From positions 868,001 through 932,000 of the forward strand of contig OX337233.1 of assembly GCA_946965045.2 (NCBI GenBank): 64,000 nucleotides of DNA. The letters are read 5' to 3'. The notes beneath the pieces were generated by a model that was not told where the DNA came from, did not search any database, and saw nothing but the letters and a program-made list of their open reading frames with translations. Both the position numbers and the translations under genes were made by a program. The stretch is from Epithemia pelagica (Eukaryota; Protista; Bacillariophyta). Positions 28,593 through 51,926 of this stretch are shown here, piece after piece; position 1 is the first letter of the stretch; each line of letters begins with the position of its first letter.

Positions 28593-30122
28593 TTAACTCT
28601 CATCACTCTTTTGGCAGGCAGGTTGAAGGACCAGAACCGCCGAACGATACCACGTCGTGCGTCCACCTCCCTCGTTTCCCGCATCATGGTGCTCCACCTC
28701 CGCTACTTTGGCGTTCCCAATCTCTTTTTCATAACGATTATCATCATCTTCAATCTCGGCCCTTTCCTCCTCGGTAAGATCCTTCATTTCCTTGACAAAT
28801 CCATCCTTATGGGAATTATACATTACCTTATCACACCAGATATTAATCGCCTTCATATCTGCGGGGGGCTTAGTCTTTGGTTTAGTCACACTACTCCCAT
28901 CCTCCAAGATAATCTTTTCCACACCATACTCATTGTAGTAATCGTCCTCGGAGTCATAAACCTTCTGAGAAAAAAAGACAAGACACAGATCAAACATGCG
29001 GTTACCAGTGTCATCTTTGGCATGGCGCAATGCACTCAAGACGACAGCATCGCGCCCCTTCAACTTTCCAAAATCAAGGCTATCCAGCGTGTATTCGTGA
29101 TCCAAACAATATCCCAACTTTCCTGTCGGGCTTGCTTTCCATTTGGCAGCCTCAACCTCAAGCTTCTTCACCATTGACTCCAGCTGACTCGTATCCGGAA
29201 CAACACCCGTTGGATGGGGCTTGGTGACGACCAAATTGTAAACCAAACAGAACCGCCAGCCCTCAGTCACCGGCATGATTTCATGTTCACAGTCTCCATA
29301 AAATGCCATGTACCGAGACGTAGTCTCACAGTCCTCGGATATCTTGAACCGCTTGGTCTCGCCACGGTGAGACACAACACTGTCGCTGCCCTGAAAGACA
29401 CTGGGTAGCTGGAGGACCAATGTCCCAAACATGCCTTCTTGCTTAACCGTGTCCTTGTGTGCCTTGAAATGACCACCCTTTTCGTACAAAAGAACCTTGT
29501 AGAGATGGGCTTCAATGCCAAGGTTTTGGACATTTTCGTTGGAAATACCAAGCTCATAGCATGCCTGTTTGACCACGTTGGAAATCGTGTCCTTCCATCC
29601 TGTCATAGATACTTGGCTTGGATCAATCTGCCATGCCTTGCGAACCGACTCGTCCAGTAACGTTTCGGGTCCTCGTCCAAACGGGGCCTTCTCCGCCACA
29701 GTGTCTTTCACATACTTGGCCATGACCGGGTGGAGAGGCAGTGCAATCGTTCCAACACTGGCAATTTCAATCTTGGAGGTCAGTCCGGGGAGTGCAAAGG
29801 TTCCCGAAGTTGCAAAGGAGCCGGCCGGGTCAATGACATCCAAGAGTTGCTTCAAATCCGATGCGTCGTACGGTTCTGCATCCGAGTCCATGATGGCTGC
29901 CTCGTCTTGATGATCGTTGGACCTACTAGTTTGACTCAGGGCGGTGAAATCCTTGGAAGAATGAGATCGCCGAGAAAGAAGGCCCTCGTCCATCCGCCAC
30001 CTGGTTTCAGGTTTTCCCCGGCGAGGATCCAATGGTGGCAATACGGTGCTGGACCACGCTGCGAAATACCCACGGTGGACGGTGGCAAGGGCGACAAGTG
30101 AGGACCTGGCAAATGGGATCAT
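28593..30122 (-). CDS. 2OG-Fe(II) oxygenase (prolyl-hydroxylase-like), copy 1
   Basis: LYKVLLYEKGGHFKAHKDT (HxD), GTLVLQLPS, FYGDCEHEIMPVTEGWRFCLVYNL (distal H and R). Confidence 0.88.
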   Translation of the reverse strand: MIPFARSSLVALATVHRGYFAAWSSTVLPPLDPRRGKPETRWRMDEGLLSRRSHSSKDFTALSQTSRSNDHQDEAAIMDSDAEPYDASDLKQLLDVIDPAGSFATSGTFALPGLTSKIEIASVGTIALPLHPVMAKYVKDTVAEKAPFGRGPETLLDESVRKAWQIDPSQVSMTGWKDTISNVVKQACYELGISNENVQNLGIEAHLYKVLLYEKGGHFKAHKDTVKQEGMFGTLVLQLPSVFQGSDSVVSHRGETKRFKISEDCETTSRYMAFYGDCEHEIMPVTEGWRFCLVYNLVVTKPHPTGVVPDTSQLESMVKKLEVEAAKWKASPTGKLGYCLDHEYTLDSLDFGKLKGRDAVVLSALRHAKDDTGNRMFDLCLVFFSQKVYDSEDDYYNEYGVEKIILEDGSSVTKPKTKPPADMKAINIWCDKVMYNSHKDGFVKEMKDLTEEERAEIEDDDNRYEKEIGNAKVAEVEHHDAGNEGGGRTTWYRSAVLVLQPACQKSDES

Positions 30123-30984
30123 GATGGTTTGTGGATTGCTTTCTTAATTCGATGGGTCTTCTGAAAATTTGCGGTTTTCCTGAACCCCAAGTTCAGATTT
30201 GATTCGCAAAGTACACTTTACTTGATAGCAGAGGTTCCACGCTGCGAATTACGCACGGTGGACAACACGAGCGTGGGGTGATTAAGGGCGACGAGTGAGG
30301 ACCTTACACGTGGGAAGATCATGTGGATTGCAACAAGAAGCAGCAGTTGTTCCCTCTCAGGTTTTGCGGTGAGCACTGAAACTCTAGTATCGTGAATGAA
30401 GGTTACCGCCATTGATCTTCAGTCCGTTATAACACTGGAATGCCTCCATGGGTAGGCTATATACGCATGATATCCAATCCAATCCTTTCTTAAATGTCTC
30501 TGAGGAAAATCGTTTCCTTGTCCAACTCAAATCGAATCAGCACGAAAGAGCAATGATTCACACATTCCAATGGAGAAACAAGCGTGGACCGACCGCCTCT
30601 AGAGAGCATTTCGCAACAGGAGACTTGGTGGAAGGACGATATCCAATCAAGTCGTCAATATTAGAATGTCTTTGGTCATCCAAGCCAAACACGTCCACAT
30701 TGATTCTCGGAATCACTGCTTTTGATACTGCGCGTATTTAGGAGGGATGATGTGAAGCGCAAATTGTGCTCCCCCATCCAAGCTTTATTTATGGGGTGGA
30801 ACGGCTGACTACTGGATCCAAATCCTTCCACCTCGGTCATCCAAAAATGGTCTCACACTTTCCTTTTCGCCCATGGAACCAAAAAATCGCAATAAAATGA
30901 CAATTTTGGACGACTGGCACACCACACTGTGGAGTTACTGCTCCGTTTCGGTGTGTTCCTCTGTCTCACTCCCGCTCTCTTGTC

Positions 30985-33591
30985 TCACGACGACCGTGTC
31001 CTGGGTGGTGGTGGTTCCTCCCCGTGATGTTGATGAGGATAATGACTAGTATTGCTGCTGCTGCTTCGGACGGGTAAGGAATATTGTCGTGTCAACAATT
31101 TTCCATGACTATCGTACAACGTGTCGTGATCGTCGAGAATGGATTCATTGTAGGGACCATGTTGCTGCACCGTAGGAGTGCCATCCGGCGGCACAGGGGC
31201 TGCCAAAGAACCACCACCACCGTGGTGATCGGAATAGGAATACTGCAGGGGTGGATGCTGCGGCTCTGGTTGTAGTGGTGGTCGTACGGTTGTCGTTCTT
31301 GCGTGCTGTGGTACCAAGAATCGAAAGAGCGCGACGGTTCCGGCCAAGTACAAGACGAGCAAGAGCAAGCCTTGAATTTCCAATTGTGCAATGAGATACC
31401 AATTAATCACCATGGCCAAACAGGGAATCCAGGGAACACAGGGAGTACGAAAATAGGACGATGGATCCGTGTCGTCGTCATTGTCGTCAGCGTCATGATC
31501 CATGGAGAGGTGGTGGTGGTGATGGTCGTCGTGGTGATTCCAAGGAGACCTGTCGTCGTCGTCGTTGGGAGAAACGTGTGGTTCCAGTGGTGTCGTGCGG
31601 GGTCCTCCTCCTCCTCGATGGTGATGTGGATCTGTACTACTAGTAGCATGCGGATTGGGATGCTGGTCCACAAAAGGAGCTTGGACCGCCATTCGGTTCG
31701 TCGTCGTCGTTGTTGGGATGGAAGGCTGTACCGCCGTGTACGAATGACGTCGCACTGTGGTCCTTGTCTTGGCAGGGTGGTACGTGGTTCCATTCGCCCC
31801 CCACAGAAGAGGGTTCCAGCAATAGGTCCACCATTGCCACCACTGCGGAGACGGAGGAGGAAAGGGGGGTTGTCGAGTGGTGGTTGTAATGGTGGTACGA
31901 CTGGGTGGTGGTTTGTTGTTGGTCGTAAAATAGGGAACAATGCCCCATCCATAACAGACCACGGTGGCCAGCGTCAAGAGGAGTACGAGTCCTTGGTTCC
32001 ACCATGGTGTCGTTGTTGTTGTTGTCGTCGTGTCAGGATTCTTCATGTCGTTCGTTGGGTCATGGTGGGAGGAGGACGATCGACTCAACAAGAGACTGGT
32101 ACTGGCACAAAGTAGATTGAAGCACAAAATGTTGCGTTGCAACGACATGGTATGGGTGTTGTTGTGGTTGTGTTTGGGGTGGGAAGGAGGAGCATATCCA
32201 TCTTGTTCTTGTGGTGGTTGTTCTTGTGGTGGTTCATGGGCCTCGAGTTCTTCTTGTGGTTGTACTTGTTGTCGTTGTTGCTGTTGCTGTTGTTGGTCCT
32301 GTCTCAATACCAAGAGACTGGCATTGGCCAAACAAAAGGCTACCAAAATGCCACAACTAATCAAATCGTCCAAATACGTAAAGGGCACGGCCGTGGCAAT
32401 GCTCGTCATGACGAGTCCCCAAATCCACGTGGCGCGGCGCAACGGATTGGCAGTGGCCGTACGGCCCGTACGGCCAAACCAAGCGGCCGGCAACAAGCCA
32501 TCGTCGGCCATGCGTTGCGACAAGCGGGGTTGGGCGAGTAACGAGACCAACACAACGACGGGCAGCGTCCCCAATTCTCCGAGGGCCGCCAGTTGCGACC
32601 AGACGGGACGATTCCGCAGGGCAAAGGCGGCGGGAAATCCAGCCGTCGGCGACACGTCCGCGGGATGGGGTACCATGCCCGTCAAGGCCATCGAAGCGCC
32701 GACGGAACACAAGGTGACAATGGCCAGTGTCGCCAAAATGGCGCGTGGCACGTTGCGACGAGGATTCACGGCTTCGCCGGCCACGACACAGACTTCGTCA
32801 TAACCCAAATAGCCAAAAAAGGCCGACGTGGTGCCCCGGACAATGCCCGTCACGCCGTGCGGCGGCGGGGTCGATCGCCAGGCCGCGCCTTGAAACAAGG
32901 TGAATCCACCCACGACCAATCCGGCAATCAAGAGCAGTTTGAGGCCGGTAATGAGATTGGTGACTTGTTTCGATTCTTGCACGCCCCAGACCAACAGGGC
33001 CATGGCCCAGAGCGAAATCAATCCAGCGGGGATATTGATCCAGCCGTCCCCCGGCAACAACCAATCGGACCAAACCGTCGAATGCGTTTGGATGCCGTCG
33101 TCGTCCTGGTTATTGGTGGTGTTCCATTCCTCCTCTTGGTCCTCTTGTCGACTCGCATCACTCATTTGTACCGTCGACGACAGATACCAGACCAGCTTGT
33201 CGCCCCACGTCCGAGCCACCGCCGCACCGGACACGGCATATTCCAAGGTCAAGCAGGCGGCGGCCAAGAGCGCCACCGTCGTGGTATACTGAGAGCCACC
33301 CAAGTGCACGGCGCGACAATAGGCATAGGTCGATCCGGTATCGGGAATGGCACTGGCCAATTCGCACAAACTCAACGCCGACGTGGTGGCGGCGACACCG
33401 GCGCCTATCCACGATAGGTAGGTATACGTTCCCGCATAGCCGTGGGCAATTTGACCGCACAGCACAAAAATGCCCGAACCGACGGTTCCCCCCACACCCA
33501 AGGCAATCAAATCCATCAAGGACATGTGACGATGCGAAGAAGGAGATGGAAGAGGCCTCGAAACATCGGTGGATGACGACGACGACGACAT
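30985..33591 (-). CDS. APC-superfamily (cationic) amino-acid permease with low-complexity insertions
   Basis: GVGGTVGSGIF, GSTYAY, FFGYLGYDEV, GEAVNPRRNVPRAI, and C-terminal FRTPCVPWIP. Intact 868-aa ORF. Confidence 0.92.
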   Translation of the reverse strand: MSSSSSSTDVSRPLPSPSSHRHMSLMDLIALGVGGTVGSGIFVLCGQIAHGYAGTYTYLSWIGAGVAATTSALSLCELASAIPDTGSTYAYCRAVHLGGSQYTTTVALLAAACLTLEYAVSGAAVARTWGDKLVWYLSSTVQMSDASRQEDQEEEWNTTNNQDDDGIQTHSTVWSDWLLPGDGWINIPAGLISLWAMALLVWGVQESKQVTNLITGLKLLLIAGLVVGGFTLFQGAAWRSTPPPHGVTGIVRGTTSAFFGYLGYDEVCVVAGEAVNPRRNVPRAILATLAIVTLCSVGASMALTGMVPHPADVSPTAGFPAAFALRNRPVWSQLAALGELGTLPVVVLVSLLAQPRLSQRMADDGLLPAAWFGRTGRTATANPLRRATWIWGLVMTSIATAVPFTYLDDLISCGILVAFCLANASLLVLRQDQQQQQQQRQQVQPQEELEAHEPPQEQPPQEQDGYAPPSHPKHNHNNTHTMSLQRNILCFNLLCASTSLLLSRSSSSHHDPTNDMKNPDTTTTTTTTPWWNQGLVLLLTLATVVCYGWGIVPYFTTNNKPPPSRTTITTTTRQPPFPPPSPQWWQWWTYCWNPLLWGANGTTYHPAKTRTTVRRHSYTAVQPSIPTTTTTNRMAVQAPFVDQHPNPHATSSTDPHHHRGGGGPRTTPLEPHVSPNDDDDRSPWNHHDDHHHHHLSMDHDADDNDDDTDPSSYFRTPCVPWIPCLAMVINWYLIAQLEIQGLLLLVLYLAGTVALFRFLVPQHARTTTVRPPLQPEPQHPPLQYSYSDHHGGGGSLAAPVPPDGTPTVQQHGPYNESILDDHDTLYDSHGKLLTRQYSLPVRSSSSNTSHYPHQHHGEEPPPPRTRSS

Positions 33592-34244
33592 GATACTGAA
33601 GAGGAGGAACGACTGTGGCTCACCGTATAGACAGTGGTTGGAGTGTGGTTCTCGTCCTTCTGTCTCCTACCACTCTCTCTTTTCCTTTGTTTTTGGAACT
33701 GGTTGGTGTCGGTGCGTCTCGATCCACGACGGAGTGTCTCTTTCTGTTTTTTATAGAGAGAGATCAGTCGTTCGAATCCCAATAATATTATGTTCTCGCT
33801 CCTCTCTCTTCTTTGCTTTTGTTCTGTTGTTGTTTGTTGTGGTTGTTCTGTTCCAAAAGTGTCTTTGGCCACATGTGCAATGGCCACGTTCTCTCGCGGA
33901 ACTTTGGAAGCTCCGGGGTCGCGCTTTCGAAACGCCCTTCGGTCACTAGACGCGACTCGTCAAGGCGCCCATTCCGTCTCGGGCACCCACTCCGTAGCCA
34001 GCATCAATCGAGTTCGTTTGTGACGCGCGCCCAACACACCCATACTTTTTGACTCGATCTCGGACACCATCCTAGAATGGTGAATGGTACCATGTCCGGA
34101 ACAGAGCAGCAAGTTTGTGTGTGTGTTTGGGGGGGGTGTGACCACACACTGCCATCGCCAAGGACTACTACTAGTACTACGACGTGGCACCCGGGCCCGA
34201 TCACCACGGCGGTGGTGGTTCGACAGCCACTGCTGTGCCGCTCG

Positions 34245-34433
34245 ACGGCCACACGACTACCATCGTGCAAGATCCCTACAATGAACCCATTCTCGACCAT
34301 CACGACACTTTGTACGAGAGTCATGGAAAGTTGCTGGCACCACACTATTCCTCACCCGTCCGTACTACGTAGTCATCATCAGCAGCATCCTGCCGTGGAG
34401 GAACCACCACCACCCAGGACACGGTCGTCGTGA
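34245..34433 (+). pseudogene. Permease 3'-end fragment (inverted duplicate)
   Basis: DNA and peptide (PYNEPILDHHDTLYESHGKLL; EEPPPPRTRSS*) match the permease C-terminus at 30985-31170. Confidence 0.85.
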
Positions 34434-35318
34434 GAGGAGAGGGAGATGCCGATACGGAGAAACACACCAAAAACGAGCAGCAACTCCACTCGGTGTGGTG
34501 TGCCAGTCGTCCAAAATTGTCATGACTTCGATTTTTGTTGGTTCCATGGGCAACGGAGTGAGACCAATTGGGGTGACCGACTTTTGGAAGGATTTGGATC
34601 CAGTCCACCACGAAACGAATGTTTGGATGGGGAAGCACAGGATTTGGAGTATCGAAAGGAAGGTCGTTAGCAACATTACAATTCCCACTTGATGTTTGCC
34701 AGTGATTCCAAGAATCGGTGTCGACGTGTTTGGTTTGGATGACCACTCTACCTCAAAGACATTCTATGAGTGACGACTTGATTGGATATCGTCCTTCCAC
34801 CAAGTCTCCCGTTACGAAATGCTCTGTAGAGGTGATCGGTCCAAGCTTGTTTTCTCCGTGTGCATATGTGAATCATTGCTCTTTCGCGCTGATTCGATTT
34901 GAGTTGGACAAGGAAACGATTTTCCTCAAAGACATTTAAGAAAGGATTGGATTGGATATCATGCGTATATAGCCTATCCATGGAGGCATTCCAGTGTTAT
35001 AACGGACTGAAGATCAATCGCGTTTCTCATGCAATGAACCTTCATTCACGTTACTTGAGTTTCAGTGCTCACCGCAAAACCTGAGAGGGAACAACTGCTG
35101 CTTCTTGTTGCAATCCACATGATCTTCCCACGTGCAAGGTCCTCACTCGTCGCCCTTAATCACCCCACGCTCGTGTGGTCCACCGTGCGTAATTCGCAGC
35201 GTGGAACCTCTGCTATCAAGTAAAGTGTACTTTGCGAATCAAATCTGAACTTGGGGTTCAGGAAAACCGCAAATTTTCAGAAGACCCATCGAATTAAGAA
35301 AGCAATCCACAAATCATC

Positions 35319-36850
35319 ATGATCTCCCCACTTGCCAGGTCCTCACTTGTCGCCCTTGCCACCGTCCACCGTGGGTATTTCGCAGCGTGGTCCAGCACCG
35401 TATTGCCACCATTGGATCCTCGCCGGGGGAAACCTGAAACCAGGTGGCGAATGGACGAGGGCCTTCTTTCTCGGCGATCTCATACTTCCAAGGATATCAC
35501 CACCCTGAGTCAAACTAGTTCCAACGATCATCAAGACGAGGCAGCCATCATGGGGACTCGGATGAAGAACCGTACGACGCATCGGAATTGAAGAAACTCT
35601 TGGATGTTATTGACCCGACCGGCTCCTTTGCAACGTGCGGAACCTTTGCATTCCCCGGACCGAACGCCAAGATTGAAATTGCCCGTGTTGGAACGATTGG
35701 ATTGCCTCTCCACCCGGTCCTCGCCAAATATATGAAAGACACTGTGGCGGAGAAGGCCCCGTTTGGACGAGGACCCGAAACATTACTGGACGAGTCGGTT
35801 CGCAAGGCATGGCAAATTGATCCTTGCCAAGTAACTATGACAGGATGGAAGGACACGGTTTCCAACGTGGTCAAACAGGCATGTTACGAGCTTGGTATTT
35901 CCAACGAAAATGTCCAAAACCTTGGCATTGAAGCTCATCTCTACAAGGTTCTCTTGTACGAAAAGGGCGGTCATTTCAAAACACATAAGGACACGGTTAA
36001 GCAAGAAGGCATGTTTGGGACATTGGTCCTCCAGCTACCCAGTGTCTTTGAGGGCAGCGACAGTGTTGTGTCTCACCGTGGTGAGACGAAGCGGTTCAAG
36101 ATATCCGAGGACTGTGAGACAACGTATCAGTACATGGCATTCTATGGAGACTGTGAACATGAAATCATGCCGGTGACCGAGGGTTGGCGGTTCTGTTTGG
36201 TGTACAATTTGGTCGTCACCAAGCCTCATCCCATGGGAGTTGTTCCGGATGGCAGTCAGCTGGAGTCAATGGTGAAGAAGCTTGAGATTGAGGCTGTCAA
36301 ATGGAAAGCAAGCTCTACAGGAAAGTTGGGCTACTGTTTGGATCATGAATACACGCTGGATAGCCTTGACTTTGGAAAGTTGAAGGGGCGCGATGCTGTC
36401 GTCTCGAGTGCATTGCGCCATGCGAAAGATGACGCTGGTAACCGCATGTTTGACCTGTGTCTTGTCTTTTTTTATCAGATGTATGAAGAATTGCCTTGTG
36501 AATACAACAATGAGTATGGAGTCGAAATGATTATCTTTGAGGATGGGAGTAGTGTGACTCGACCGAAGAGTAAGCCCCCCGCAGGTATGAAGGGGATCAA
36601 CATATGGTGTGATAAGGCAATGCATACTTCTCAGAATGATGGATTTGTCAAAGAAATGAAGGATCTTACCGAGGAGGAAAGGGCCGAGTTCGAAGCGAAT
36701 AGTCTTGATGAGGAAATACAGATTGGGAACCGTAAAGAAGTGGAGGTAGAGCACCATGAAGCGGGAAACCAGGGAGGTGGACACACGACGTGGTATCGCT
36801 CGGCAGTCCTGGTCCTTCAACCTGCATGCCACAAGAGTGATGAGAGTTAA
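35319..36850 (+). CDS. 2OG-Fe(II) oxygenase, copy 2; +2 G frameshift right after the internal ATG; catalytic domain open
   Basis: ATGGGGACTCG here versus ATGGACTCG in copies 1 and 3. The HKD/H/R motifs are intact in ORF 35588-36850. Confidence 0.8.
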
Positions 36851-37846
36851 TCTATTCGCAGTCCTCAACTGTGACTCCAACCTAGTAAAATTTTTAGTCC
36901 GAATTGCCTATGAGAACAAAGAGAGTTCTTGGCCGGTCCATTGTTTTACTACTCGTAGTCGGATCTAAATAAGTATGGAGGGGGGAACCTGGAATTACAA
37001 CAAACCTCGACCCCCCTGGACACGAGTCCAGTCCACTACGAGTGGAACCACGGTTGGTCACCAATTCCCTCTCCTTCTTTGTCGACCCCATCCCGAAAAT
37101 GACCTTGAGGAGTTGGAGCAGTTTGACAATGGGAAGCGGATGCGCACCAAGACTTGTGTGGCCTGTGATGGTCTTGGTTTGGTCGTGGACCGACACATTC
37201 ATGCACCCTACAATGCCCATGACGAACGCCTTGGATAATAGTAGCAACGCAACAATGACAATGCTTGCAATGCGGTGGATCACAAATCTGCAGCTTTACA
37301 GGAGGATAGTCCCAGATTCTTACTCAATTGGGGAACCGTTCTTCCGTCCTACAACTTCCAACAGGGTTGCATGGCGCCTGGAACTCCGATATCTCTAACC
37401 AGAGGTAGACCCCACCGAAATGCATGTTCAGGATTATCGATGGTTGTAGTGGTAGCAAGAACCAAACATACAATAAAGATGATGAGGATGATATTGACAC
37501 ACCTGTAGCCATTGCCTTTCGGCAATTCCGTGTGGCCAATCGGAGCAAGGGTCGCAGTGTTATTGGCCTGCCATGTGTCAAGAAAGGATTGTTGCCATTG
37601 GCGCAACCCATTCCAGATGTTGCCACGGCCATTTCCCATACACTGGAACCTCAAATCTTCGAACGGTCCATTGGTTGTCGTTTGGCTTTGCTCGCCCATC
37701 CGAAACACGAGGTAATTTACGAATGATCGTAGAGTTACTTCTGCCATTACGGAGGCACAAAAGCCACTTTTATCACCTCGGTGGAGGCAAACCAAAACCG
37801 TGTCTTTGACTTACTAATCCAATGCTAATATCGTTATTCAAAAAGA

Positions 37847-40800
37847 CTACGCGTCAGAACGATTCGTTCGAATGGTGGTTGCCATGGCTTGGTCTTTGCC
37901 ACCATCCGACTCGGACGACGATGACGACAAGGATACTGCAGCAGCATTCTCCGGACCCACCAGGGACAAGACAACAGGTAACAGAATCAAACCATGACCC
38001 ACACCCAAGGTCACCAAGCCCACAAAGGCAATGAAAATCGTATAAAAGATGGTACTTGTCGAAAAGGCCAATGGCAAGGTTCCCATAAAGGTCGAAATAC
38101 CACCAATCAACACCGATGCACCCATGGTCCTCAACATTTCCGCAACCTTTTCTTCACGGTTGCCCGATGACTCATAGTATCGCAACAAGACGTGCAAAAT
38201 AAAGTCAACCAACAAACCAATCGACATGACCAAGGCAATGTAACTCACGGCATTCACGTGAACACCCGCCCATTGCATCACACCCAACAAATCAATATAC
38301 AACAAACAAATCATGGGAAGGACAAACAAGGCTCCCGTCCAATGGGGAACAAACACCAGAGCGACAGCTGTCACGGCAACCACTCCCAAGACAGTCGTCA
38401 AAATGAGCTCGTCCACTGACACGGCATAAAACTCCCAAATATCATAAATACCATCATAGGAAAAGAACCTCCAGTCGGACTGACCGGCATTGATGGGTTG
38501 ACGGGATGTCACGGATCGCTGATCTTTCAATGTGTCAATTTGATCGTTCACATCTTCAATGTCCACATTGTCCATTTGAAGTTCCACACGAGACGCAATA
38601 ATGTGACCACTTGTCTCATTTCGAACAATGTGATCGGCGTACAAGTCAAAGAACACCAGATCGGACAAAAATGCATCCAGTTGTTGCGGAAAGTCGAGTG
38701 TCGACAAGGTACCACTTTCATCTTGTGCCACAAAAGCTTTAAAGTCACGGAGCCAAAAAAATTCTGGTTGCTCCTCAATCGCATCAATCGTCACAAGATC
38801 ATTCACATAGTCTTCCATTTGTTGTTGAATATCCTCTCGGGACTGATCCACAAACCGAAAGTACGCATAAGGCGCAACTGTACTTCGAGCGGTATACTCG
38901 TCCAAGGAATCCAAAAAGTCAGTCACATAGGAATCATCTGGCATCACGTCCGAGAACTCAAACTCTTGCGTCAAATTGGATGCACTGAACGAGCACACAA
39001 TGGCCAATGCAACAAACGAGACAAGGACCACAACCTTGACGATAGGGTTCATCAAAAACTTGGCATACCGGACCATAAATGCGTCCACAAAAGTGCCAGT
39101 GTGTTTGGATGAACTTGTTGTTGTTGTTGTTGCCTGTTTTGGTGCAGTACTGGTCTCTTCGTCTTGTTGCTGTTGTTCTTCGTCATCATTATCGTTTCCT
39201 GGCTTGGCCGTGATGCAAGTGCAGCAATCACGACGTCCCTCTTGGATGCGACGAGCATCCAGCACGAGGCAACCCACGAAAAAGGTCAATTGGTAAATAT
39301 AGATAAAGATAATTGTGGGAAAGGCATACAAACACAACCAATACACGGCCGGAATGCTCGACAAACAACCGAGGCCAAAGGCCAACACCGAGGTCAAGGT
39401 TGTCAAGGTAATGGAAAGACCGGCTTCTTCCATGGTCTCCTCAATCCGTTCCGTAATTTCCTTGTCTTCACTGGTTCGGGAAAAGGCCCCATACACAATA
39501 AAGGCATCATCCAAACCAATACCAAAAATGACAAAGGGAAGAATCTGAGTCATGGAGGTGAAGCTCACGCCGATTATGAACAAGAGACCAAATCCAGAAA
39601 AGAGACTGAGCAAGACCGAAATGACTGCGGAAAAGCCCAACAAACTTTGCGACCGAACCTTGTCCCTTTTCCAAAACACCAAGGCTGTGAAAATCGACAT
39701 GACCACAAAGACAATGGGAATCAAGGGAATATCTCGCACAATGGCACGTTCAAATCTGTTGTAAAAGCACAAAGAGAAACATCATGAGCATCAGAGAACC
39801 AGATAACATGTTTTATAACTTGCAGCATTGATATAAAACATCGCACGTACTCATCGCCAAAAGACCGTTCGGCCAACACTTCAAGATGCAAATTGTTGCC
39901 CTGGATTGCCTCGAGAGCATCACTCAAGTCATGAATGGCATCCAAGGCATCCTCTTCAAAGTCTTCCACCTCTTCCTCATCGGTACCCGGCAAGGCAAAC
40001 GTGATGGAATACGACTGGGCCGACACCAAGGTACCATCAGAACTACGCTCTGGTTTGCCAAAGACTCCATTTTCCGAAACTGGACTGCCATCGGGAAAGG
40101 TCAGGGCCGACATGGCTTCAATGGCTTCTTGATCCGAACCAATCTGGTCTTCAAAAATGGCGGTCGTCAAGTTCCAAAAGTTGACCACACCATCAATTTC
40201 ACACGTTGTCTCACCAGTAGTGGGATTGATGTAGGTGCTCTTGGCACAAATACGATCGTACCCCCGAACACCTCGCACGGTATCCAAGGCTTCAAAGACA
40301 TGATTCAACTGAGATTGACCCAAGACATTGGCACCATTGGCATGAAAAAAGAGAATAAAATCACGCGATTCCACTGGAAAGCCTGGTTTGGACTCTTCAA
40401 TCCAATCACTATGCTTGACCGGTTTCGAGTTGGCGGGTGTCCACAACTTGTCTTCGTCCACATCCAAGGTGAAATTGGTAAACAAACCCACGACCAAGAG
40501 CATCAAGGATAAACACGTGACGGCGAGAATGGTGCGTTTGGGGTTGCGAGCAGCAATTTGCGTCACACGCTGCAAGGAGGCCACAATGGGAGCATGGAGG
40601 AACAAGACGCCACGCGTCCACTTGTCGGACAAAGTGTCAGACTGGAGCGTGTCGTTCTCGCGAGAGTCTGCAGTACGACGAGAATGGTCGTTAGTATATT
40701 ACAGTTTCAGTGTTGAACCTTGCAATACATCGCCATGTTTCATCGTACCTTGCTCATTGGAGGTGTGGCTGTCATCAGACGGCGTAATATTATCGTCCAA

Positions 40801-40869
40801 GACAACCGATTCCATCTTGGAAGGCGCCATGTTGGCAGTTTCGTTTTCCTTTTCAAATTCAAGGCTCAT
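37847..40869 (-). CDS. Patched/NPC1-like sterol-sensing-domain membrane protein, copy 1 (exons 40869-39851 and 39755-37847)
   Basis: GT-AG intron 39756-39850 joins FGDE to FERAIVRD. SSD-like GIGLDDAFIV, EEAGLSITLTTLTS, SIGLLVDF, HGLILLPV. About 975 aa. Confidence 0.9.
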
Positions 40870-41764
40870 CTTGGTTGAGTTCTTTGTTTGCTGAATCGTT
40901 TTTGATTCGAGTGGAAGCTTGTTTTATGAGCTTTGGTTGGATCCTTGACACGATACATAACTTTTTCGTTGGCGATATTGGAGAGGAAGATGACGAGGAT
41001 GATGTAAGATATAGAATCTAGTTGGGGAATGATCCTGTTCCTTCCCGATTCGTTGGTGGGAATCAATTTCAAAGTCCATGGAGTGTTCTCGTGTGATCAT
41101 CCTGTAGACACATGATGATGGGTCTTCCTTGCTGTCTGCACGATGGTTGTCTCTTGTCACAACGAGAGAAACGGATGCTCTCGGTTTGTTCCTAGGAATC
41201 CACAGGATGCAAGTCATGAGAGGTTGCCTCTCAGCCAAGAAGCACCGCGATGCAAGGACGATCACTTGTCGAAGGATCCGGAATGTTCTTGCTATTGACG
41301 TAGGCTGTGACCCTACGGTGTATTGGTAGAGGCTGAGGACGATGGTGGTATGCTTACAGCTTACACACTCCACCAACATTGGAACAATGAGGAAGCACCA
41401 CAAAATGAGAGATGTCGAACAACGTAATCGGTTGTCCGGACGAGCATACGTGCCGGCGCGCGCCTTGCCTTTTGAACTATGAATGAAAGTGTACTGATCA
41501 GATCTCAAACTCTCTCCTCTATTGGATACAGGTAGCAGCAACAGCAGTAAAAGGTTAGCAGCAGCAGCAACATAGCTACTCCTACAATCACGAGTAGGCA
41601 CAAACGAGAGCATAGCGGAGATGTCAAAGCGAGAGGAAGAATGGGCCAAGGAGCTCAAGGCGGTGGAGGAAGATATCGCCAAGAAGTGGGAATGCGTTGA
41701 TGTGGTGAAAAAGGAGGCGACCGAGTGTTCAGACCCCGAATGGCGTACAGCTACAGGACGGCAG

Positions 41765-42040
41765 ATCCACTGCAAAACCTGAAAAGGCGGAATGCTTCTC
41801 GACAACTCCCATGTTACCCTGCGTTTTCCCACGTCCAAGGTTGCGACCGTATACACCCTTACGCTCGTACTTTACAGCATGGTCCACCGTGTATAATTTG
41901 CAGCGTATCGCAGTCCATCACCGTGCACCCGTACGTTCGCATTGCCACACACTCAACTCCATCAACCCGTTGGCGGATCCTCCACAAGGTGCTTTCTCGA
42001 CAATCGCTCATTCTTTCAAGGATATCATCACCGCAGGTCA
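41765..42040 (+). pseudogene. Diverged relic of the 2OG upstream/leader region
   Basis: GCAAAACCTGA, TTCCCACGT.CAAGG and CCACCGTG.TAATT.GCAGCGT occur collinearly with 35075-35200. Peptides RSYFTAWSTV and HSFKDIITA echo the 2OG leader. Confidence 0.55.
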
Positions 42041-43192
42041 ACCTAGAATGCGCAACGCATGGTTCCCAAAACGGCGCGTTCGCGTTGCGGAAGCCCAGCG
42101 GCGCGCAAAAGAGCGTCACATGCCAACAAAAAAGAGGTAGTTGTTGTTGTGGACTTGGTGTTGGTGTGGCTCCTCTTCTTGTCTATTACTAGGACTCTAA
42201 CGGCTTCGCCAAGAACTACTACTACAATGTGGCACGTTGGTAACGTGCCTCCTTGTGGTTCCTATTGTTGAAAGGAAGGTTTGTGCCAGAAGGAAATCGC
42301 GGTTGACGGCAACAGTCCATTGTGTGTGTCTCTGGAGTTTAGGGGGCGGGGGGCGAGCGGAATTCTTGGAACTAAAGAGGAGGAATTGTTCCAATGCATT
42401 TGTGGAGAGGTCGTGCTATTATTTGATGTAGTCAGTTCCCGTCCAAACGACGGAGATTAAGTTTATATGGGATCGGTTCGCCTTCAGGAGCAACCACACT
42501 TTTGTTGTGCGGAGGAGGAGGGATTCGATGGACACGTTCCGCGTGTGAGTTCTTTGTGAAGAACGGTCCTCCCATGGCTTCTAATTTGTTGCTGTTATCA
42601 TTGAGTGGAAAGAACACACCCGTGTGAGGTTGTTGTGTGGAGGGCAGCCTCAAAATCTCCATGTTGCGGCATTCTCCACAGTCACTCTTGACATTGTCAC
42701 CATTGCAAACGCGCTTCGAATGGCTACTACCGAGGACTGGGATATACGAAACAGGAACATATGCAGTAGCAGTTTTGCTGTGATGTATGCAACACGAAAA
42801 CTCGTTTCGAATAACTACTGCCTAGGACTGAGATATATACAACACGAACAGATGAAGTAATAGCTTGGCTGTGAGGTATGCAACATGCAACACGAAACGA
42901 ATGATGATGGTTTCTCGCTACGTTAACTCAATCTGTCATACATACACTTTCGCGATACTCCGCCACAGGTTCTTCTTTGCGCATTTGCTCACGCAACGAT
43001 ACAAGCAACGCCTGGATTCTTTCACTTTGCCTGTAACTGCCTAGGTCTTCGTCAGAGCACCAGCATCACCGCAAAAACTGGAAAGGGAATGAGCAATAAG
43101 TACAATTCAAGCTAATAAGGCGATAAGCGGTAATTGCAAGTGCCATAACCTCTGCTATCAAGTAAAGTGTACTTTGCGAATGAAATCTGAAC

Positions 43193-44842
43193 TTGGGGTT
43201 CAGGAAAACCGCAAATTTTCATAAGACCCAACGAATTGAGAAAAAGAGCTCTTGCTGCAATCGACGCATGATCTTCCCACTTGCCAGGTTCTCAATTATG
43301 ACCCTTGCCACCATGCTCCACCGTCGACCGTGCGTAATCCGCAGCTTGGTCCATCGCCGTGCACCCTTATTGCGTTCGAGTCGTCCTACTATTGCCTATT
43401 GCAACCATTGGATCCTCGCCGGAAAACATGAAACCGATTGGCGGATGCACGAGGGGCTTCTTTCTAGGCGATCTTATTCTTCCAAGGATATCACCGCCCT
43501 GAGTCAAACTAGTAGGTCCAACGATCTTCAAGACGAGGCAGGCATCATGGACTCGGATGCAGAACCGTACGACGCATCCGGGTTGAAAAAACTCTTGGAT
43601 GTCATTGACCCGGCCGGCTCCTTTGCAACGTCGGGAACCTTTGCACTCCCCGGACTAAGCGCCAAAATTGAAATTGCCAGTGTTGGAACGATTGGATTGC
43701 CTCTCCACCCAGTCTTGGCCAAGTATATGAAAGACACTGTGGCGGAGAAGGCCCCGTTTGGACGAGGACCCGAAACATTACTGGACGAGTCGGTTCGCAA
43801 AGCATGGCAGATTGACCCCAGCCAAGTAACTATGACAGGATGGAAGGACACGGTTTCCAACGTGGTGAAAGAGGCATGTTACGAGCTTGGTATTTCCAAC
43901 GAAAATGTCCAAAACCTTGGCATTGAAGCTCATCTCTACAAGGTTCTCCTGTACGAAAAGGGTGGTCATTTCAAGGCACACAAGGACACGGTTAAGCAAG
44001 AAGGCATGTTTGGGACATTGGTCTTCCAGCTACCCAGTGTCTTTGAGGGCAGCGACAGTGTTGTGTCTCACCGTGGCGAGACCAAGCGGTTCAAGATATC
44101 CGAAGACTGTGAGACAACGTCTCAGTACATGGCATTTTATGGAGACTGTGAACATGAGATCATGCCGGTGACAGAGGGTTGGCGGTTCTGTTTGGTTTAC
44201 AATTTGGTCGTCACCAAGCCCCATCCAACGGGAGTTGTTCCGGATGGCAGTCAGCTGGAGTCAATGGTGAAGAAGCTTGAGATTGAGGCTGCCAAATGGA
44301 AAGCAAGCCCGACAGGAAAGTTGGGATACTGCTTGGATCATGAATACACGCTGGATAGCCTTGACTTTGGAAAGTTGAAGGGGCGCGATGCTGTCGTCAT
44401 GAGTGCATTGCGCCATGCGAAAGATGATGCTGGTAACCGCATGTTTGACCTCTGTCTTGTCTTTTTTTCTCAGATGGTTCAACTCACCCCTCATGAATAC
44501 GACAATCAGTATGATGTAGAAAAGATTATTTTTGAGGATGGGAGTAGTGTAACTGAACCAAAAACTACGCCACCCGCAGATATGAAGGCGATCAACATAT
44601 GGTGTGATAAGGTAATGTATACTTCCCATAAGGATGGGTTTGTAAAGGAAATGAAGGATCTTACGGATAAGGAAAGGACCAAGATCGAAGAGAATGATTA
44701 TTATGAAATACAGATTGGGAACCGTAAAGAAGTGGAGGTGGTGCACCATGATGCTGGAAACGAGGGAGGTGGACACACGACGTGGTATCGTTCGGCGGTT
44801 CTGGTCCTTCAACCTGCCTGCCAAAAGAGTGATGAGAGTTAA
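43193..44842 (+). CDS. 2OG-Fe(II) oxygenase, copy 3 (start codon uncertain)
   Basis: Intact ORF with HKD, HEI and GWR motifs. Confidence 0.88.
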   Translation: MGFRKTANFHKTQRIEKKSSCCNRRMIFPLARFSIMTLATMLHRRPCVIRSLVHRRAPLLRSSRPTIAYCNHWILAGKHETDWRMHEGLLSRRSYSSKDITALSQTSRSNDLQDEAGIMDSDAEPYDASGLKKLLDVIDPAGSFATSGTFALPGLSAKIEIASVGTIGLPLHPVLAKYMKDTVAEKAPFGRGPETLLDESVRKAWQIDPSQVTMTGWKDTVSNVVKEACYELGISNENVQNLGIEAHLYKVLLYEKGGHFKAHKDTVKQEGMFGTLVFQLPSVFEGSDSVVSHRGETKRFKISEDCETTSQYMAFYGDCEHEIMPVTEGWRFCLVYNLVVTKPHPTGVVPDGSQLESMVKKLEIEAAKWKASPTGKLGYCLDHEYTLDSLDFGKLKGRDAVVMSALRHAKDDAGNRMFDLCLVFFSQMVQLTPHEYDNQYDVEKIIFEDGSSVTEPKTTPPADMKAINIWCDKVMYTSHKDGFVKEMKDLTDKERTKIEENDYYEIQIGNRKEVEVVHHDAGNEGGGHTTWYRSAVLVLQPACQKSDES

Positions 44843-45754
44843 TCTATCCGCAGTCCTCAAAATGTGACTCCAACCAAGTAGTATTTGTAGTCTGAATCGC
44901 CTATGAGAACAAATAGAGATCTTGGCCGGTCCATTCTCCTTAAGCCCTATAAACACATCGTTTTACTACTCGTACTTCTTTCTATAAGTAGGGCGCGGGA
45001 ATCTTAGAAATACAAAATACAACCAACTTCGACCTCGCTGACAAGCCAATACAACGGCGCAAGTCCACTGCGCGTCGATCCACGGTTGTTCACCAAATGT
45101 TCCCTGTGCTTCTTTGTCGATCATTGCGAAAATGATCATGAAGAGTTGGAGCAGATTGACGATGGAAAGCGGGTGCGCACCAAGACTGGTGTGGTCTGTG
45201 ATGGTAGGCCGACACATTGATGGACCCTACAGTGCCCACGACGAGTTGGTAAAGGGGGAGGCTCCCAAGAGCGCCTTGGATAAGAGTAGCAACAATGACA
45301 ATGCTCGCAATGCGGGGGAACAAAAATCTACAGCTTTCGGGAGGATAATCCTAGATTCTTTGGACAACTCCATTGGGGAACCATTCTTCCGTCCTACTAC
45401 TTCCACCGGGGTTCTATGGTCCCCTGGAACTCCGATATCTCCAACACGAGCGAAATGCAAGTCCAGCAGGATTATCGCCACTACCTTTTGGCAATTCCGT
45501 ATGGCCATTCCGGACGTAGGTTCTCCAATGTCCTTGAGGAAAAGATGGTTCCAAACCGAAACACATACATAGGCAAGAGAGCAATCATTCAGACCTGGTG
45601 TGGCACGACCCTGATATGCAATCAAGTCGTCAATCATAGAATGTCTTTACGGTATGCATTGGGTCATCCAAGCCAAACACGTCGACACCGATTCTCGGAC
45701 TCACAAGCACACAGACAGATGTGAGAGTTTTTTAGTGTTGCTAGAGGACGTTGG

Positions 45755-46400
45755 CACTGGCCAATTCACACAGTCTCAGTGCCGAGGGCGTGGCCGCCAC
45801 ACCGGATCCCATCCTAGGAAATGTAGGTATAAGTGCCGGCATTTGCGTGGGCAATTTGACCGCACAGCACCAAAATGCCCGAACCGACCGTCCTGCCCAC
45901 ACCCAAGGCACTCAAATCCAGCAAGGACATGTGACAACGAGAAGAAGAAGAAGAAGAAGATAAAGGAGGAACAGTCCTCGAAGCATCGGTTGATGATGAT
46001 GATGACGGCGACATGAGAATGAGGAGGTGGAACGAATGGCACACCGTACCACTCTCTCTCTCTTTCGCTTTGTTTTTGGAACTGGTCGGTGTCGGTGCCT
46101 CGATCCACGACGGGGTGTTTTTATAGAGAGAGAGACCACAGTCACAGTCGTTCGAATCCCAATAATATTATATATGTTCTCGCTCCTCTTGTCTTTGCTG
46201 GTTCTGTTGTTGTTGATCTGTTCCAAGTGTCTTTGGCAATGGCCGTCGCGGTAGGAACTTTGGAAGCTCGCGTTTCAAACGCCCTTCGGTCACTCTTAAC
46301 GCGACTCTCCAAGGCGCCCATTCCGTCTCGGGCACCCACTTCGTAGCCAGCATCAAACGAGTTCGTGTTGGTGACAAAGATCGCAACTCGCAACATACTC
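45755..46400 (-). pseudogene. Second duplicated 5' flank and N-terminal fragment of the permease
   Basis: ATG at 46014 gives MSPSSSSSTDAS...MSLLDLSALGVGRTVGSGILVLCGQIAHANAGTYTYIS*. Confidence 0.85.
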
Positions 46401-47038
46401 TCCGCCCTCGTACTCGTAAGGATCGCCTCCCCCCATACTTCTTCTTTCGACCTTGTGGTGAACCGTTCGGTGAGACCTCAGTTTGTTGGTGTGGAGCCGG
46501 GCCCTCTCAAGGAACGAGCGGCAACGTCTCTCTCAGAGCGGCGGAACATCCCCCATTCTACGAGAGTACACATCACGACAGACGACCATGACGACCACCA
46601 CACACCCGTCGAACGATCGTGTCCCCATTCTCGCCGTGGTTGGTTGGTAGATTTGTAGTTTCTTGTCGTACCGACCATCCTTCTCCTCAGGATCGTCCTT
46701 TCGTTTTGGATCATGGCGACGACGACGACGATACGTACCAACCCCAAAGGATAAGGATCCGTCGGTCTTGCAACCATCTCCCCGTGTTGTGTTTGTGTTT
46801 GTGTTTGTGCCTGGAGTTCCTTTTCATTGGACCATTGAGAGTGGTGATATAGAATAGATTCATGGGTATACAGATTCTCGAATGGCGCGCAGACACGCGC
46901 ATAAAAAATGGAACTTGGATTCTTGGTGGTGGTATGACTCGTCGTTGTCCCTCTGTGTTTGTGTACTAGAGTGCGTGGCGTCGTCCTCGTGGTGGTTTCA
47001 CCACAGAGAACCGACCCTACGGAAGAAAGAGGAGGTAT

Positions 47039-47413
47039 TTGTCGTCGCTGGAATGCATCTATGTTCGGATCCTTCCTTCTCCCCATGGTTGGCCGGGACC
47101 AAACAAGCCACAAGGAGGATATCAGAACATGGTGGAGGAGGGTCCCGGTATGGATTGGACAAGAAGATATATCTGTTCTGGACGACCAATCACACCGCAG
47201 AGTTTGGATGGCCACACGACTACCATGGTGCAGCAGCAAGGTCCCTACAAGGAATCCATTCTCGACCATCACGACACTTTGTACGATATTCATGGAAAGT
47301 TGTTGACACGACACTATTCCTTACCCGTCCGAAGCAGCAACAGCAAAACTAGTCATTATCATCATCCTACCGTGGAGGAACCACCACCACCAACCAGAAC
47401 ACGGTCGTCATGA
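47039..47413 (+). pseudogene. Permease-paralogue 3'-end fragment
   Basis: VQQQGPYKESILDHHDTLYDIHGKLLTRHYSLPVRSS...RTRSS* matches the permease C-terminus. Confidence 0.8.
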
Positions 47414-48311
47414 GAGGAGAGAGCGGGTGTGACACGGAGGAACAGAGTAGCAACGCCACTCGGTGTAGAGTGGTGTACCAGTCGTCCATATTGTCATGAG
47501 TGCGATTTTTTGTTGGTTCCATGGGCCGAGAAGTGAGGCCATTTGGGGTGGCCGACTGATGGAACGAATTGGATCCAGTCAGCTGTTCCACCCCCATAAA
47601 CAATGCTTGGATGGGGAAGCACAGGCGCTTGATATCAACTGCCTCCGAAATACACGTAGCATCAAGAAGAAGGTCTCTAGCAACATTACAAACTGTCACA
47701 TTATGTTTGCCAATGATTCCGAGAATCGGTGTCGACGTGTTTGGTTTGGATGACCACTCTACCTCAAAGACATTCTATGATTGACGACTTGATTGGATAT
47801 CGTCCTTCCATCAGTCTCCTGTTGCGAAATGCTCTGTAGAGGCGGTCCAAGCTTGTTTCTCCATTGGAATGTGTGAATCATTGCTCTTTCGCGCTGATTC
47901 GATTTGAGTTGGACAAGGAAACGATTTTCCTCAGAGACATTTAAGAAAGGATTGGATTGGATATCATGCGTATATAGCCTACCCATGGAGGCATTCCAGT
48001 GTTATAACGGACTGAAGATCAATGGCGGTAACCTTCATTCACGTTACTAGAGTTTCAGTGCTCACCGCAAAACCTGAGAGGGAACAACTGCTGCTTCTTG
48101 TTGCAATCCACATGATCTTCCCACGTGTAAGGTCCTCACTCGTCGCCCTTAATCACCCCACGCTCGTGTGGTCCACCGTGCGTAATTCGCAGCGTGGAAC
48201 CTCTGCTATCAAGTAAAGTGTACTTTGCGAATCAAATCTGAACTTGGGGTTCAGGAAAACCGCAAATTTTCAGAAGACCCATCGAATTAAGAAAGCAATC
48301 CACAAATCATC

Positions 48312-49843
48312 ATGATCTTCCCACTTGCCAGGTCCTCACTTGTCGCCCTTGCCACCGTCCACCGTGCGTATTTCGCAGCGTGGTCCAGCACCGTATTGCC
48401 ACCATTGGATCCTCGCCGGGGGAAACCTGAAACCAGGTGGCGGATGGACGAGGGCCTTCTTTCTCGGCGATCTCATACTTCCAAGGATATCACCACCCTG
48501 AGTCAAACTAGTTCCAACGATCATCAAGACGAGGCAGCCATCATGGGGACTCGGATGAAGAACCGTACGACGCATCAGAATTGGAGAAACTCTTGGATGT
48601 TATCGACCCTGCCGGCTCCTTTGCAACGTCGGGAAACTTTGCATTCCCCGGATTAAACACCAAGATTGAAATTGCCCGTGTTGGAACAATTGCATTGCCT
48701 CTCCACCCGGTCTTGGCCAAATATATGAAAGACACTGTGGCGGAGAAGGCTCCGTTTGGAAGAGGACCCGAAACGTTACTGGACGAGTCGGTTCGCAAGG
48801 CATGGCAGATTGATCCAAGCCAAGTATCTATGACAGGATGGAAGGACACGGTTTCCAACGTGGTCAAACAGGCATGCTATGAGCTTGGTATTTCCAACGA
48901 AAATGTCCAAAACCTTGGCATTGAAGCTCATCTCTACAAGGTTCTCTTGTACGAAAAGGGCGGTCATTTCAAAACACATAAGGACACGGTTAAGCAAGAA
49001 GGCATGTTTGGGACATTGGTCCTCCAGCTACCCAGTGTCTTTGAGGGCAGCGACAGTGTTGTGTCTCACCGTGGCGAGACCAAGCGATTCAAGTTATCCA
49101 AGGACTGTGAGACAACGCCTCAGTACATGGCATTTTACGGAGACTGTGAACATGAAATCATGCCGGTGACAGAGGGTTGGCGGTTCTGTTTGGTGTACAA
49201 TATGGTTGTCACCAAGCCCCATCCGATGGGTGTTGTTCCGGATGGCAGTCAGCTGGAGCCAATGGTGAAGAAGCTTGAGATTGAGGCTGCCAAATGGAAA
49301 GCAAGCCCGACAGGAAAGTTGGGATACTGCTTGGATCACGAATACACGCTGGATAGCCTTGATTTTGGAAAGTTGAAGGGGCGCGATGCTGTGGTCATGA
49401 GTGCATTGCGCCATGCCAAAGATGACGCTGGTAACCGCATGTTTGACCTGTGTCTTGTCTTTTTCTCTCAGGAGGTTCTTGACTCCCCTGACGAATGCTA
49501 CAGTTTGTATGGAGTGCAAAAGATTATCTTTGAGGATGGGAGTAGTGTGACTGAACCGAAGAGTAAGCCTCCCGCAGGTATGAAGGGGATCAACATATGG
49601 TGTGATAAGGTAATGTATACTTCCCATAAGGATGGATTTATCAGGGAAATGAAGGATCTTACCGAGGAGGAAAGGGCCGACATCGAAGATGACGATATGC
49701 CTTATGAAATAGAGATTGGGAACCGTAAAGAAGTGGAGGTAGAGCACCATGATGCAGGAAACGAGGGAGGTGGACACACGACATGGTATCGTTCGGCGGT
49801 TTTGGTCCTTCAACCTGCCTGCCAAAAGAGTGATGAAAGTTAA
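48312..49843 (+). CDS. 2OG-Fe(II) oxygenase, copy 4; same +2 G frameshift as copy 2
   Basis: ATGGGGACTCG near 48543. Catalytic ORF 48581-49843 is intact. Confidence 0.8.
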
Positions 49844-51578
49844 AACTATATCCGCGGTCATCAAAATGTGACGCCAACCAAGTAGTATTTGTAATCCGAA
49901 TCGCCTATGAGAACAAAGAGAGTCCTTGGCCGGTCCATTCTCCTTAAGCCTTATAAACACATCGTTTTACCACTCGTACTTCTTTCTTTAAGTATAGCGC
50001 GGGGAACTTAGAACTACAACAAACCTCGACCTCGCTGAAAAGTCAATACAATGGCGCAAGTCCACTACAAGTGGAACCACGGTTGGTTACCAAATGTTCT
50101 TTGTCGACCATCCCGAAAATGACCATGAGGAGTTGGAGCAGATTGACGATGGAAAGCGGGTGCGCACCAAGACTGGTGTGGTCTGTGATGGTCTTGTTTT
50201 GGTCGTAGGCTGACACATTCATGCACCATACAATGCCCACGACGAGTTGGTAAAGGGGGAGGCCCTAATGAGCGCCTTGGATGAGGGAGTAGCAACAATG
50301 ACAATGCTTGCAATGAGGTCGAACAAATATCTACAGCTTTCAGGAAGATATTCCTACTCCTAAATTCTTTGGACAACTCCATTGGAAACCATTCTTCCGT
50401 CCTACAACTTCCACCGGGGTTGCATGGTCCCCTGGAACTCCGATATCTCCAACACGAGGGAGACCCGAAATGCATGTCCAGGATTATCGATGGTGGTGGT
50501 GGCAAGAACCAAGTATATAATAAAGATGATAAGGATGATAATGACAGGCCCGTAGCCATTACCTTTTGGCAATTTCGTATGGCCAATCCGGACGTGGTTC
50601 TCACATTGTATAGGGGAGCAAGTGGCGCGGGGTTCTTGGAAGGCCAGGTGTCAATGAACCATTGTTGCCATTCGGACAAGCCATTCCAGATGTTGCCACG
50701 GCCATTTCCTTTACACCGGAACCTTCTATGTTTGAACGATCCATTGTCCCATTCCACGTACATCCCAATAGACTCCATTGGTTGTCGTTCGTTTTTGCTC
50801 ACTAGGCCATCGTCCGGCGGTGCAAGATCTGTAGTGGTATTAGACGCGGCAAATGGACAACATCCAAACAAATGGTCAAGCTGTCAATTCGGCCTTTGAA
50901 AGTGTTGCGGCACTTGTCGATGCCATTCGAACCAAACTGAACAAGACAGATAGTTATGGCCGTTCGAAGGATACTGTACATGAGGACTCATAGGATTGGA
51001 ATGGCATCTTGGCGACCGTTGAACCAGCGCGCAAACCACCACATGCAGAACTGGTTCAGTGATTTGCCACAACATTGATGGCAAATCTTCTACTGGATAA
51101 GGCGGATGTAAAGGGCGCCTTCCTCAATTGGAGCAAAGGAGGAGGCGCGAAGATACCATGCAACTTGATACAATGCGACAGCCACCACGAGACCGACGAT
51201 GAATGTCCGAATGGAAAGCATTGGGGAGCGATTCTTATCAATCAATCCATCAAGACCGTCAAAGGGGGTCCCGGGAACGAGATCTTCTAGTAAGTTATCC
51301 AGTCGATGGACTCATTGGAATAACAGCGCCATTGTTGCGACGTAGACAAGATCCCATGTCATCAAAGATTTTCCCTCCAAGAAAAGATTCTCAAGAACGA
51401 TGGCACACCGACTGGACAAACGCACGGTTCTCGAGGCTATCCACCCTACCGGTGATTACACATCCAGCGAACCATTGGAATGGTGCAAAAAACGGACGAT
51501 TTACCCGTAAAACGAGCCTGCCCCCAACGAGCTTCATCCATCCATCAAATGAGAACTATAGGTCGGATTTTGATGAGC

Positions 51579-51832: not shown

Positions 51833-51926
51833 TGACCTCGATGATGCTCTGATCGATCCAAACGGGTTAGATGAGGTAGAGGACGACCCCTCTAGGTTTC
51901 AAGAAGCGCGAGATGGAGATCACTTT

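Follow-up and report, generated by a model that had tools for sequence, protein, structure and literature searches.

Four paralogous genes for putative 2-oxoglutarate (2OG)/Fe(II) oxygenases, here termed c1 to c4, lie within a 64,000-nucleotide stretch of the diatom Epithemia pelagica (contig OX337233.1, positions 868,001 to 932,000 of the forward strand; hereafter the window, whose numbering is used throughout), and the encoded proteins differ predominantly at two short acidic patches within a C-terminal domain that has no known fold. The most likely explanation, to which we assign a rough probability of 0.5, is that the patches reflect relaxed constraint on exposed, indel-tolerant loops of an old, conversion-prone tandem family. 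The patches appear to evolve at least at the neutral rate and perhaps somewhat faster.

Two variable patches in a conserved scaffold

The gene c1 is located on the reverse strand (28593-30122) and comprises an intact 509-residue open reading frame (ORF), in which an 89-residue N-terminal leader is followed by a prolyl-hydroxylase-like 2OG/Fe(II) domain (about 29214-29831, reverse strand) and the C-terminal domain (about 28596-29126, reverse strand; residues about 255-431). The remaining copies reside on the forward strand, namely c2 at 35319-36850, c3 at 43268-44842 and c4 at 48312-49843. The reading frame of c3 is also intact, opening at 43193 with its first ATG at 43268, and that of c2 is split between a leader ORF (35319-35591) and a body ORF in another frame (35588-36850). 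The body ORF of c4 (48581-49843) is preceded by the same +2 frameshift as in c2. The four proteins share 85-89% identity.

Patch 1 forms the distal part of a long beta-hairpin of the C-terminal domain and is encoded at 28914-28964 on the reverse strand in c1 (KVYDSEDDYYNEYGVEK), and on the forward strand at 36479-36529 in c2, 44474-44524 in c3 and 49472-49522 in c4. Patch 2 spans the end of a helix and an acidic loop modelled with low confidence, and is encoded at 28722-28760 on the reverse strand in c1 (AEIEDDDNRYEKE) and at 36683-36721, 44678-44713 and 49676-49714 on the forward strand in c2, c3 and c4, respectively. Both patches are acidic. The first-pass annotation of this DNA had located all four reading frames, had placed the patches to within a codon, and had quoted peptide strings that proved exact on re-checking. 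Its statement that the first patch varies without an indel is correct for patch 1, but does not extend to patch 2, which is one codon shorter in c3 than in the other three copies.

The clustering of differences is pronounced, with 26 of the 30 columns inside the patches being variable, compared with 58 of 390 outside (Fisher test, odds ratio 37, p=3e-16). As the first-pass annotation had noticed, most of the patch changes are non-synonymous, the ratio of non-synonymous to synonymous differences per pair being about 14:3 in patch 1 and 10:1 in patch 2. When the proportions of non-synonymous and synonymous differences per site (pN and pS) are counted by the method of Nei and Gojobori (NG86), pN/pS is 0.19 over the first 289 codons, but 1.00 in patch 1 and 1.40 in patch 2. 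The synonymous proportion is itself raised in patch 1 (pS 0.34 versus 0.16 elsewhere), a value that is based on only about 8.5 synonymous sites. Outside the patches, a maximum-likelihood (ML) codon model (GY94/F3x4) yields a non-synonymous to synonymous rate ratio (omega) of 0.22 with a kappa of 2.0. Across whole genes, pairwise synonymous divergence (dS) is 0.19-0.24 and non-synonymous divergence (dN) 0.05-0.08, giving omega values of 0.21-0.37. Because of this dS, the scaffold that had been described as near-identical is so at the level of the protein, but not of the DNA.

Domain architecture of the oxygenases

An AlphaFold2 model generated from 38 homologues (predicted local distance difference test score (pLDDT) 86, predicted template-modelling score 0.66; residues in 431-residue numbering) comprises two domains, the first of which (residues about 20-225) adopts a double-stranded beta-helix (DSBH) similar to that of prolyl hydroxylases (PHDs). 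Structural comparison with VIA-align matches this N-terminal domain to the Pseudomonas PPHD (4iw3_A; Z 14.6, root-mean-square deviation 4.3 Å over 177 residues) and, using model residues 20-227, to PHD2 and the Trichoplax PHD (Z 12-13.5). His144, Asp146 and His202, which form an HxD...H motif, as well as Arg212, are invariant in c1 to c4 and throughout an alignment of 38 homologues; by analogy, the three former residues are predicted to constitute the iron-binding triad and Arg212 to contact the C5-carboxylate of 2OG. The Pfam profile PF13640 scores only 23.7-25.3 bits on the four copies, just under its gathering threshold of 27 bits, although a precomputed match to it is present in many homologues. 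Since the modelled fold and the iron triad both back the assignment, it stands despite the sub-threshold score, and the N-terminal domain is supported as a PHD-like Fe(II)/2OG oxygenase, probably a 2OG-dependent hydroxylase, in agreement with the first-pass annotation.

The second domain (residues about 255-431) carries the conserved motifs LGYxLDHxYT, LKGRD, GNEGG and WY and is predicted with a pLDDT of 83 when modelled alone. No match was found among solved structures (best Z 4.0, to a secretin; best Foldseek E-value 0.04), in Pfam at E<=10 or in NCBIfam; a profile search of PDB sequences returned nothing meaningful, and a protein atlas yielded only unnamed clusters of hypothetical proteins. 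A literature search found no description of the oxygenase family or of the patch pattern. This region may represent an undescribed domain that always follows the PHD-like oxygenase domain. Both patches map to it, and not, as had been proposed, to loops of the catalytic hydroxylase domain: patch 1 lies on a hairpin with strands at residues 299-312 and 317-328 (pLDDT 81-92), and patch 2 on the helix end and loop, where the pLDDT falls to about 61, consistent with a loosely constrained segment.

Patch turnover across the family

The best homologues of c1 to c4 are found in stramenopile transcriptomes and assemblies. The family has at least 15 members in E. pelagica, whose genome comprises 60.5 Mb in 23 contigs, and is also present in other stramenopiles, the amoebozoan Balamuthia, fungi and some bacteria. 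In an alignment of 33 homologues, column entropy is highest at the patches (2.95 and 3.15 bits versus a mean of 1.94), as is the stretching caused by indels, 24 residues being spread over 38 columns and 21 residues over 63. Identity falls at the patch columns in every close eukaryotic pair, for example from 85% to 56% or from 77% to 21%, whereas the loss is much smaller for the actinobacterial members. On the basis of this entropy, the indels and the consistent drop in close pairs, rapid turnover of the patches is a general trait of the family's eukaryotic branch.

A replicate of the pattern is provided by two paralogues on contig C16 (L005 and L006, at 1.892 and 1.920 Mb), which form an inverted pair 28 kb apart and are 95% identical to one another and 61% identical to c1-c4. 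The residues at which they differ gather in the two segments that are also variable among c1 to c4, and their patch 1 contains six indel codons, as would be expected for indel-tolerant loops.

Further relatives of the oxygenases are clustered on contig C1 (about 125-195 kb), where at least eight genes encode proteins of 930-1410 residues. These could be taken for SET-oxygenase fusions, but Pfam detected no SET domain in either of two that were inspected. One of these, L016 (3636-6428), contains the same two-domain module (33% identity over 440 columns), followed by an extension of ~480 residues without a Pfam domain, and in another, L017 (3509-7735), the oxygenase domain starts near residue 420 of 1409.

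Patch types across assemblies

Cluster look-ups provided 11 further gene models, allowing a comparison across three assemblies at the level of proteins, which for the other assemblies drew on alleles from contigs of 525,664 and 513,873 bp. Three of the 11 (P0064, P0069 and P0003) are located on a 1,051,330-bp contig that bears the window's own copies. The four patch types reappear with 0-1 change per 30 residues: that of c1 in P0001, P0063 and P0064, that of c2 in P0004 and P0069, that of c3 in P0066 and P0067, and that of c4 in P0071. The scaffolds of alleles, by comparison, differ by up to 17 residues. A fifth type is represented by P0068, from a 525,664-bp contig of another assembly, in which patch 2 is c4-like and patch 1 appears to be chimeric, with a c3-like head, a novel middle and a c2-like tail. 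We note that the assembly containing P0068 has more than four copies, such that copy number differs between haplotypes or strains.

High allelic polymorphism at the patches was not found among these proteins from few assemblies, nor was there any sign of ongoing hypermutation. Because each patch type recurs essentially unchanged, the patches are stable, copy-specific tags rather than hypervariable alleles. This contrasts with classical host-pathogen or self/non-self loci, to which the first-pass annotation had likened the pattern.

Gene conversion and the age of the cluster

Downstream of c2, c3 and c4, the intergenic sequences retain about 70-85% identity, a divergence similar to the dS of the genes. 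Upstream, the situation is different. The 602 nucleotides preceding c1 (30117-30718, reverse strand) have counterparts before c2 and c4, and these regions are 98-100% identical over most of their length. They resemble one another far more closely than do the coding sequences, at about 92%, or the DNA beyond the 3' ends of the genes, at about 80%. Relative to c1, the region upstream of c4 (47711-48317) is 95% identical over the whole stretch and 99% over a 475-nucleotide core, and that upstream of c2 (34700-35324) is 92% identical overall and 98% over the core. The upstream region of c3 is unrelated to the other three. A genome-wide search with the c1/c2/c4 upstream sequence returned no other occurrence. 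We read the shared region as a gene-conversion tract; that it could be a transposon is ruled out by its presence at these loci only.

Within the genes, informative sites conflict, with 17 grouping c1 with c3 and c2 with c4, and 15 grouping c1 with c4 and c2 with c3, and they fall into 11 runs (permutation P=0.023). Mixing is also evident between alleles, given that P0004, an allele of c2, differs from it at 17 scaffold positions, of which 11 agree with other paralogues, and that the c1 allele P0001 carries a c3-like tail. Taken together, the clustered conflicting sites, the near-identical upstream regions and these two mixed alleles demonstrate gene conversion among c1 to c4, which are conversion mosaics.

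The 89-residue leader is found in c1 to c4, but not in the paralogues on C16 or in homologues from other species, and might have a targeting role. In c3 it is longer and diverged. The frameshift in c2 and c4 arises at a run of G residues (35552-35555 and 48545-48548, respectively), which reads GGGG where c1 and c3 have GG and shifts the body into a different frame from the leader. In another assembly, the alleles of c2 (P0004) and c4 (P0071) are intact and encode 509 residues. As the bodies of c2 and c4 also remain open with an omega of about 0.33, the frameshift must have arisen recently and be confined to this haplotype or assembly, representing either a null allele that was spread by conversion or an assembly error at a homopolymer. 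An intron at this position was ruled out, since the ORF aligns colinearly with homologues, among them the transcript-derived P0008, and since P0004 and P0071 read through.

Also duplicated in the window is a gene for a protein of the Patched/sterol-sensing-domain type (37749-41510 and 58871-62647). The pair has 96.5% DNA identity, a dS of 0.077 and an omega of 0.07; the two genes are therefore similar rather than identical, and there are two such copies rather than four. They are much less diverged than the adjacent c2 and c4 (dS 0.20), though both apparently belong to one segmental duplication. The second duplication unit contains an insert (about 50746-58871) with an ORF for a DDE_Tnp_1_7 transposase (54638-57925).

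Relaxed constraint as the probable explanation, and its alternatives

Under the explanation that we favour, a two-domain enzyme would have given rise to four old tandem or inverted duplicates with a neutral divergence of about 0.2, in which purifying selection keeps the cores of both domains (omega about 0.2) and gene conversion shuffles and partly homogenises the copies. The hairpin tip, together with the helix end and loop, would be solvent-exposed, acidic and tolerant of indels, with residues that have little or no function to constrain them, and would have diverged at a roughly neutral rate. Once diverged, the patches may have been too different for conversion to act upon and would thereby have persisted as stable tags of each copy. 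Consistent with relaxed constraint, divergence within the patches (29-34%) is near that of the intergenic DNA between copies (18-30%). Moreover, when the local rate is left free in the ML model, a patch omega of 1 combined with a 2.1-2.2-fold local rate is only about 2 log-likelihood units worse than the best fit.

Several observations weigh against relaxed constraint. The ML tests were performed on a four-taxon tree of four DNA sequences, with the patch windows for the partition test chosen after the data had been seen. With branch lengths fixed to the gene-wide synonymous scale, the 30 patch codons have an omega of 2.5, with a likelihood-ratio test (LRT) statistic of 27-30 against omega=1; with the local rate free, omega is 2.3-2.4 at a relative rate (r) of about 1.0-1.1, and the improvement of this fit over omega=1 (r=2.1-2.2) reaches only p=0.04-0.05. 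Site models, for which no sites were chosen beforehand, favour M2a over M1a on each of two topologies (LRT 8.7, p=0.013, and 6.8, p=0.033), with about 4-7% of sites at an omega of 3.3-4.2 and with high posteriors at codons 299-303, 308 and 372, which lie within the patches, as well as at 272 and 324. The C16 pair, for which homology fixed the patches beforehand, gives an omega of 2.0 within them (p=0.064) compared with 0.31 elsewhere. In addition, in several patch codons two or three neighbouring bases have changed along one branch, such as GAG versus CCT on that of c1, a pattern that is unlikely under neutral point mutation. Other segments that are weakly conserved across the family, such as residues 221-260, barely vary among c1-c4, and the structure model shows patch 1 as an ordered hairpin rather than as disorder.

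These points allow for a tentative alternative, which we regard as less probable than relaxed constraint, namely that the hairpin tip and the acidic loop diverged under positive selection after duplication, such that each copy docks a different partner or substrate, and that the patch type was then maintained. The ordered and, in the model, protruding hairpin would suit such a role, as would the preservation of the patch types in three assemblies whose scaffolds have drifted, and the repetition of the same hot spots in the C16 pair. The test results, however, derive from four sequences and post hoc windows, and gene conversion and recombination are a known source of false positives in site-model tests. 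The ML signal leans towards positive selection but is modest, and recombination and adjacent-base changes, both of which can inflate such tests, are present here. The counting ratios are 1.0-1.4, the same columns are rich in indels and unconserved family-wide, and any binding role of the C-terminal domain is putative. The proposal of diversifying selection made in the first-pass annotation therefore holds insofar as the patches change far more rapidly than the remainder of the gene and ML estimates of omega exceed 1, but is not borne out by counting or by the homologues, which are unconstrained at these positions. Three outcomes had been named beforehand as speaking against it, that is, a dN/dS not above 1, raised synonymous divergence and a lack of constraint in homologues, and it is largely these that we observe, with counting ratios of 1.0 and 1.4 and a pS of 0.34 versus 0.16.

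Less probable again is a local mutational hot spot, whereby the acidic, low-complexity DNA of the patches, with its GAx and TAY codons, would mutate at a locally raised rate through slippage and through indel-associated or multi-nucleotide events, the changes being tolerated only because the loops are unconstrained. The one-codon indel in patch 2 of c3, the six indel codons in the C16 pair, the adjacent-base changes in many patch codons and the raised local pS would fit with such a process, as would the local rate fitted with omega set to 1, which is 2.1-2.6-fold that of the whole gene. Conversely, an active hot spot is difficult to reconcile with 0-1 change in 30 residues over three assemblies, or with the constant length of patch 1 in c1 to c4. 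Very improbable is that the variation reflects loss of function and decay of some copies. The frameshifts between leader and body in c2 and c4, together with the frameshifted tail of P0067, a c3-type protein of another assembly, could be taken as signs of decay, but all pairs, c2 with c4 among them, have an omega of 0.21-0.37 overall and of about 0.19 across the catalytic domain. Moreover, the body ORFs are uninterrupted, P0004 and P0071 are intact alleles, and decay would not be expected to stay within two patches.

Should the patches be merely unconstrained loops, as we favour, c1 to c4 would constitute an ordinary tandem gene family, whose main value lies in annotation, namely of a widespread, unnamed two-domain oxygenase family with a C-terminal domain of no known fold. 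If, by contrast, positive selection were the cause, the hairpin tip would mark a putative docking surface for substrates or partners, and swapping the patches would offer a direct handle on the function of the enzyme family. A broader and equally tentative possibility is that the protruding hairpin and acidic loop act as a specificity module, which diversifies repeatedly under positive selection after duplications in diatoms, as in the quartet of the window and the pair on C16, and thereby yields a panel of hydroxylases for different protein partners.

Relation to known systems

The N-terminal domain of c1 to c4 superposes on that of the PHDs (4iw3/4j25, human PHD2, PF13640) despite a sequence identity of only 12-17%. 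Two features distinguish the copies from PHDs: an extra conserved N-terminal segment, APFGRGxxTLxDExVR, and the C-terminal domain of roughly 180 residues, which has no counterpart in PHDs. Furthermore, the mobile substrate loops of PHDs are located within the catalytic domain, whereas the variable patches described here lie outside of it. The ribosomal prolyl hydroxylases OGFOD1, Tpa1 and Ofd1 likewise combine two domains, of which the N-terminal one is PHD-like and catalytic, and the structures 4nhy and 3kt1 were among the Foldseek matches. In these proteins, however, the C-terminal domain is a second, inactive DSBH (Ofd1_CTDD), which that of c1 to c4 is not, given that it matched no solved structure and no Pfam profile.

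Tandem multigene families can evolve by gene conversion, with divergent segments escaping homogenisation. Like such families, c1 to c4 are mosaics with near-identical promoter and leader regions and with short diverged segments that remain copy-specific across haplotypes. They differ in that the scaffold is only weakly homogenised, its dS of about 0.2 being close to the intergenic divergence, and in that no evidence of high allelic polymorphism was seen in their patches.

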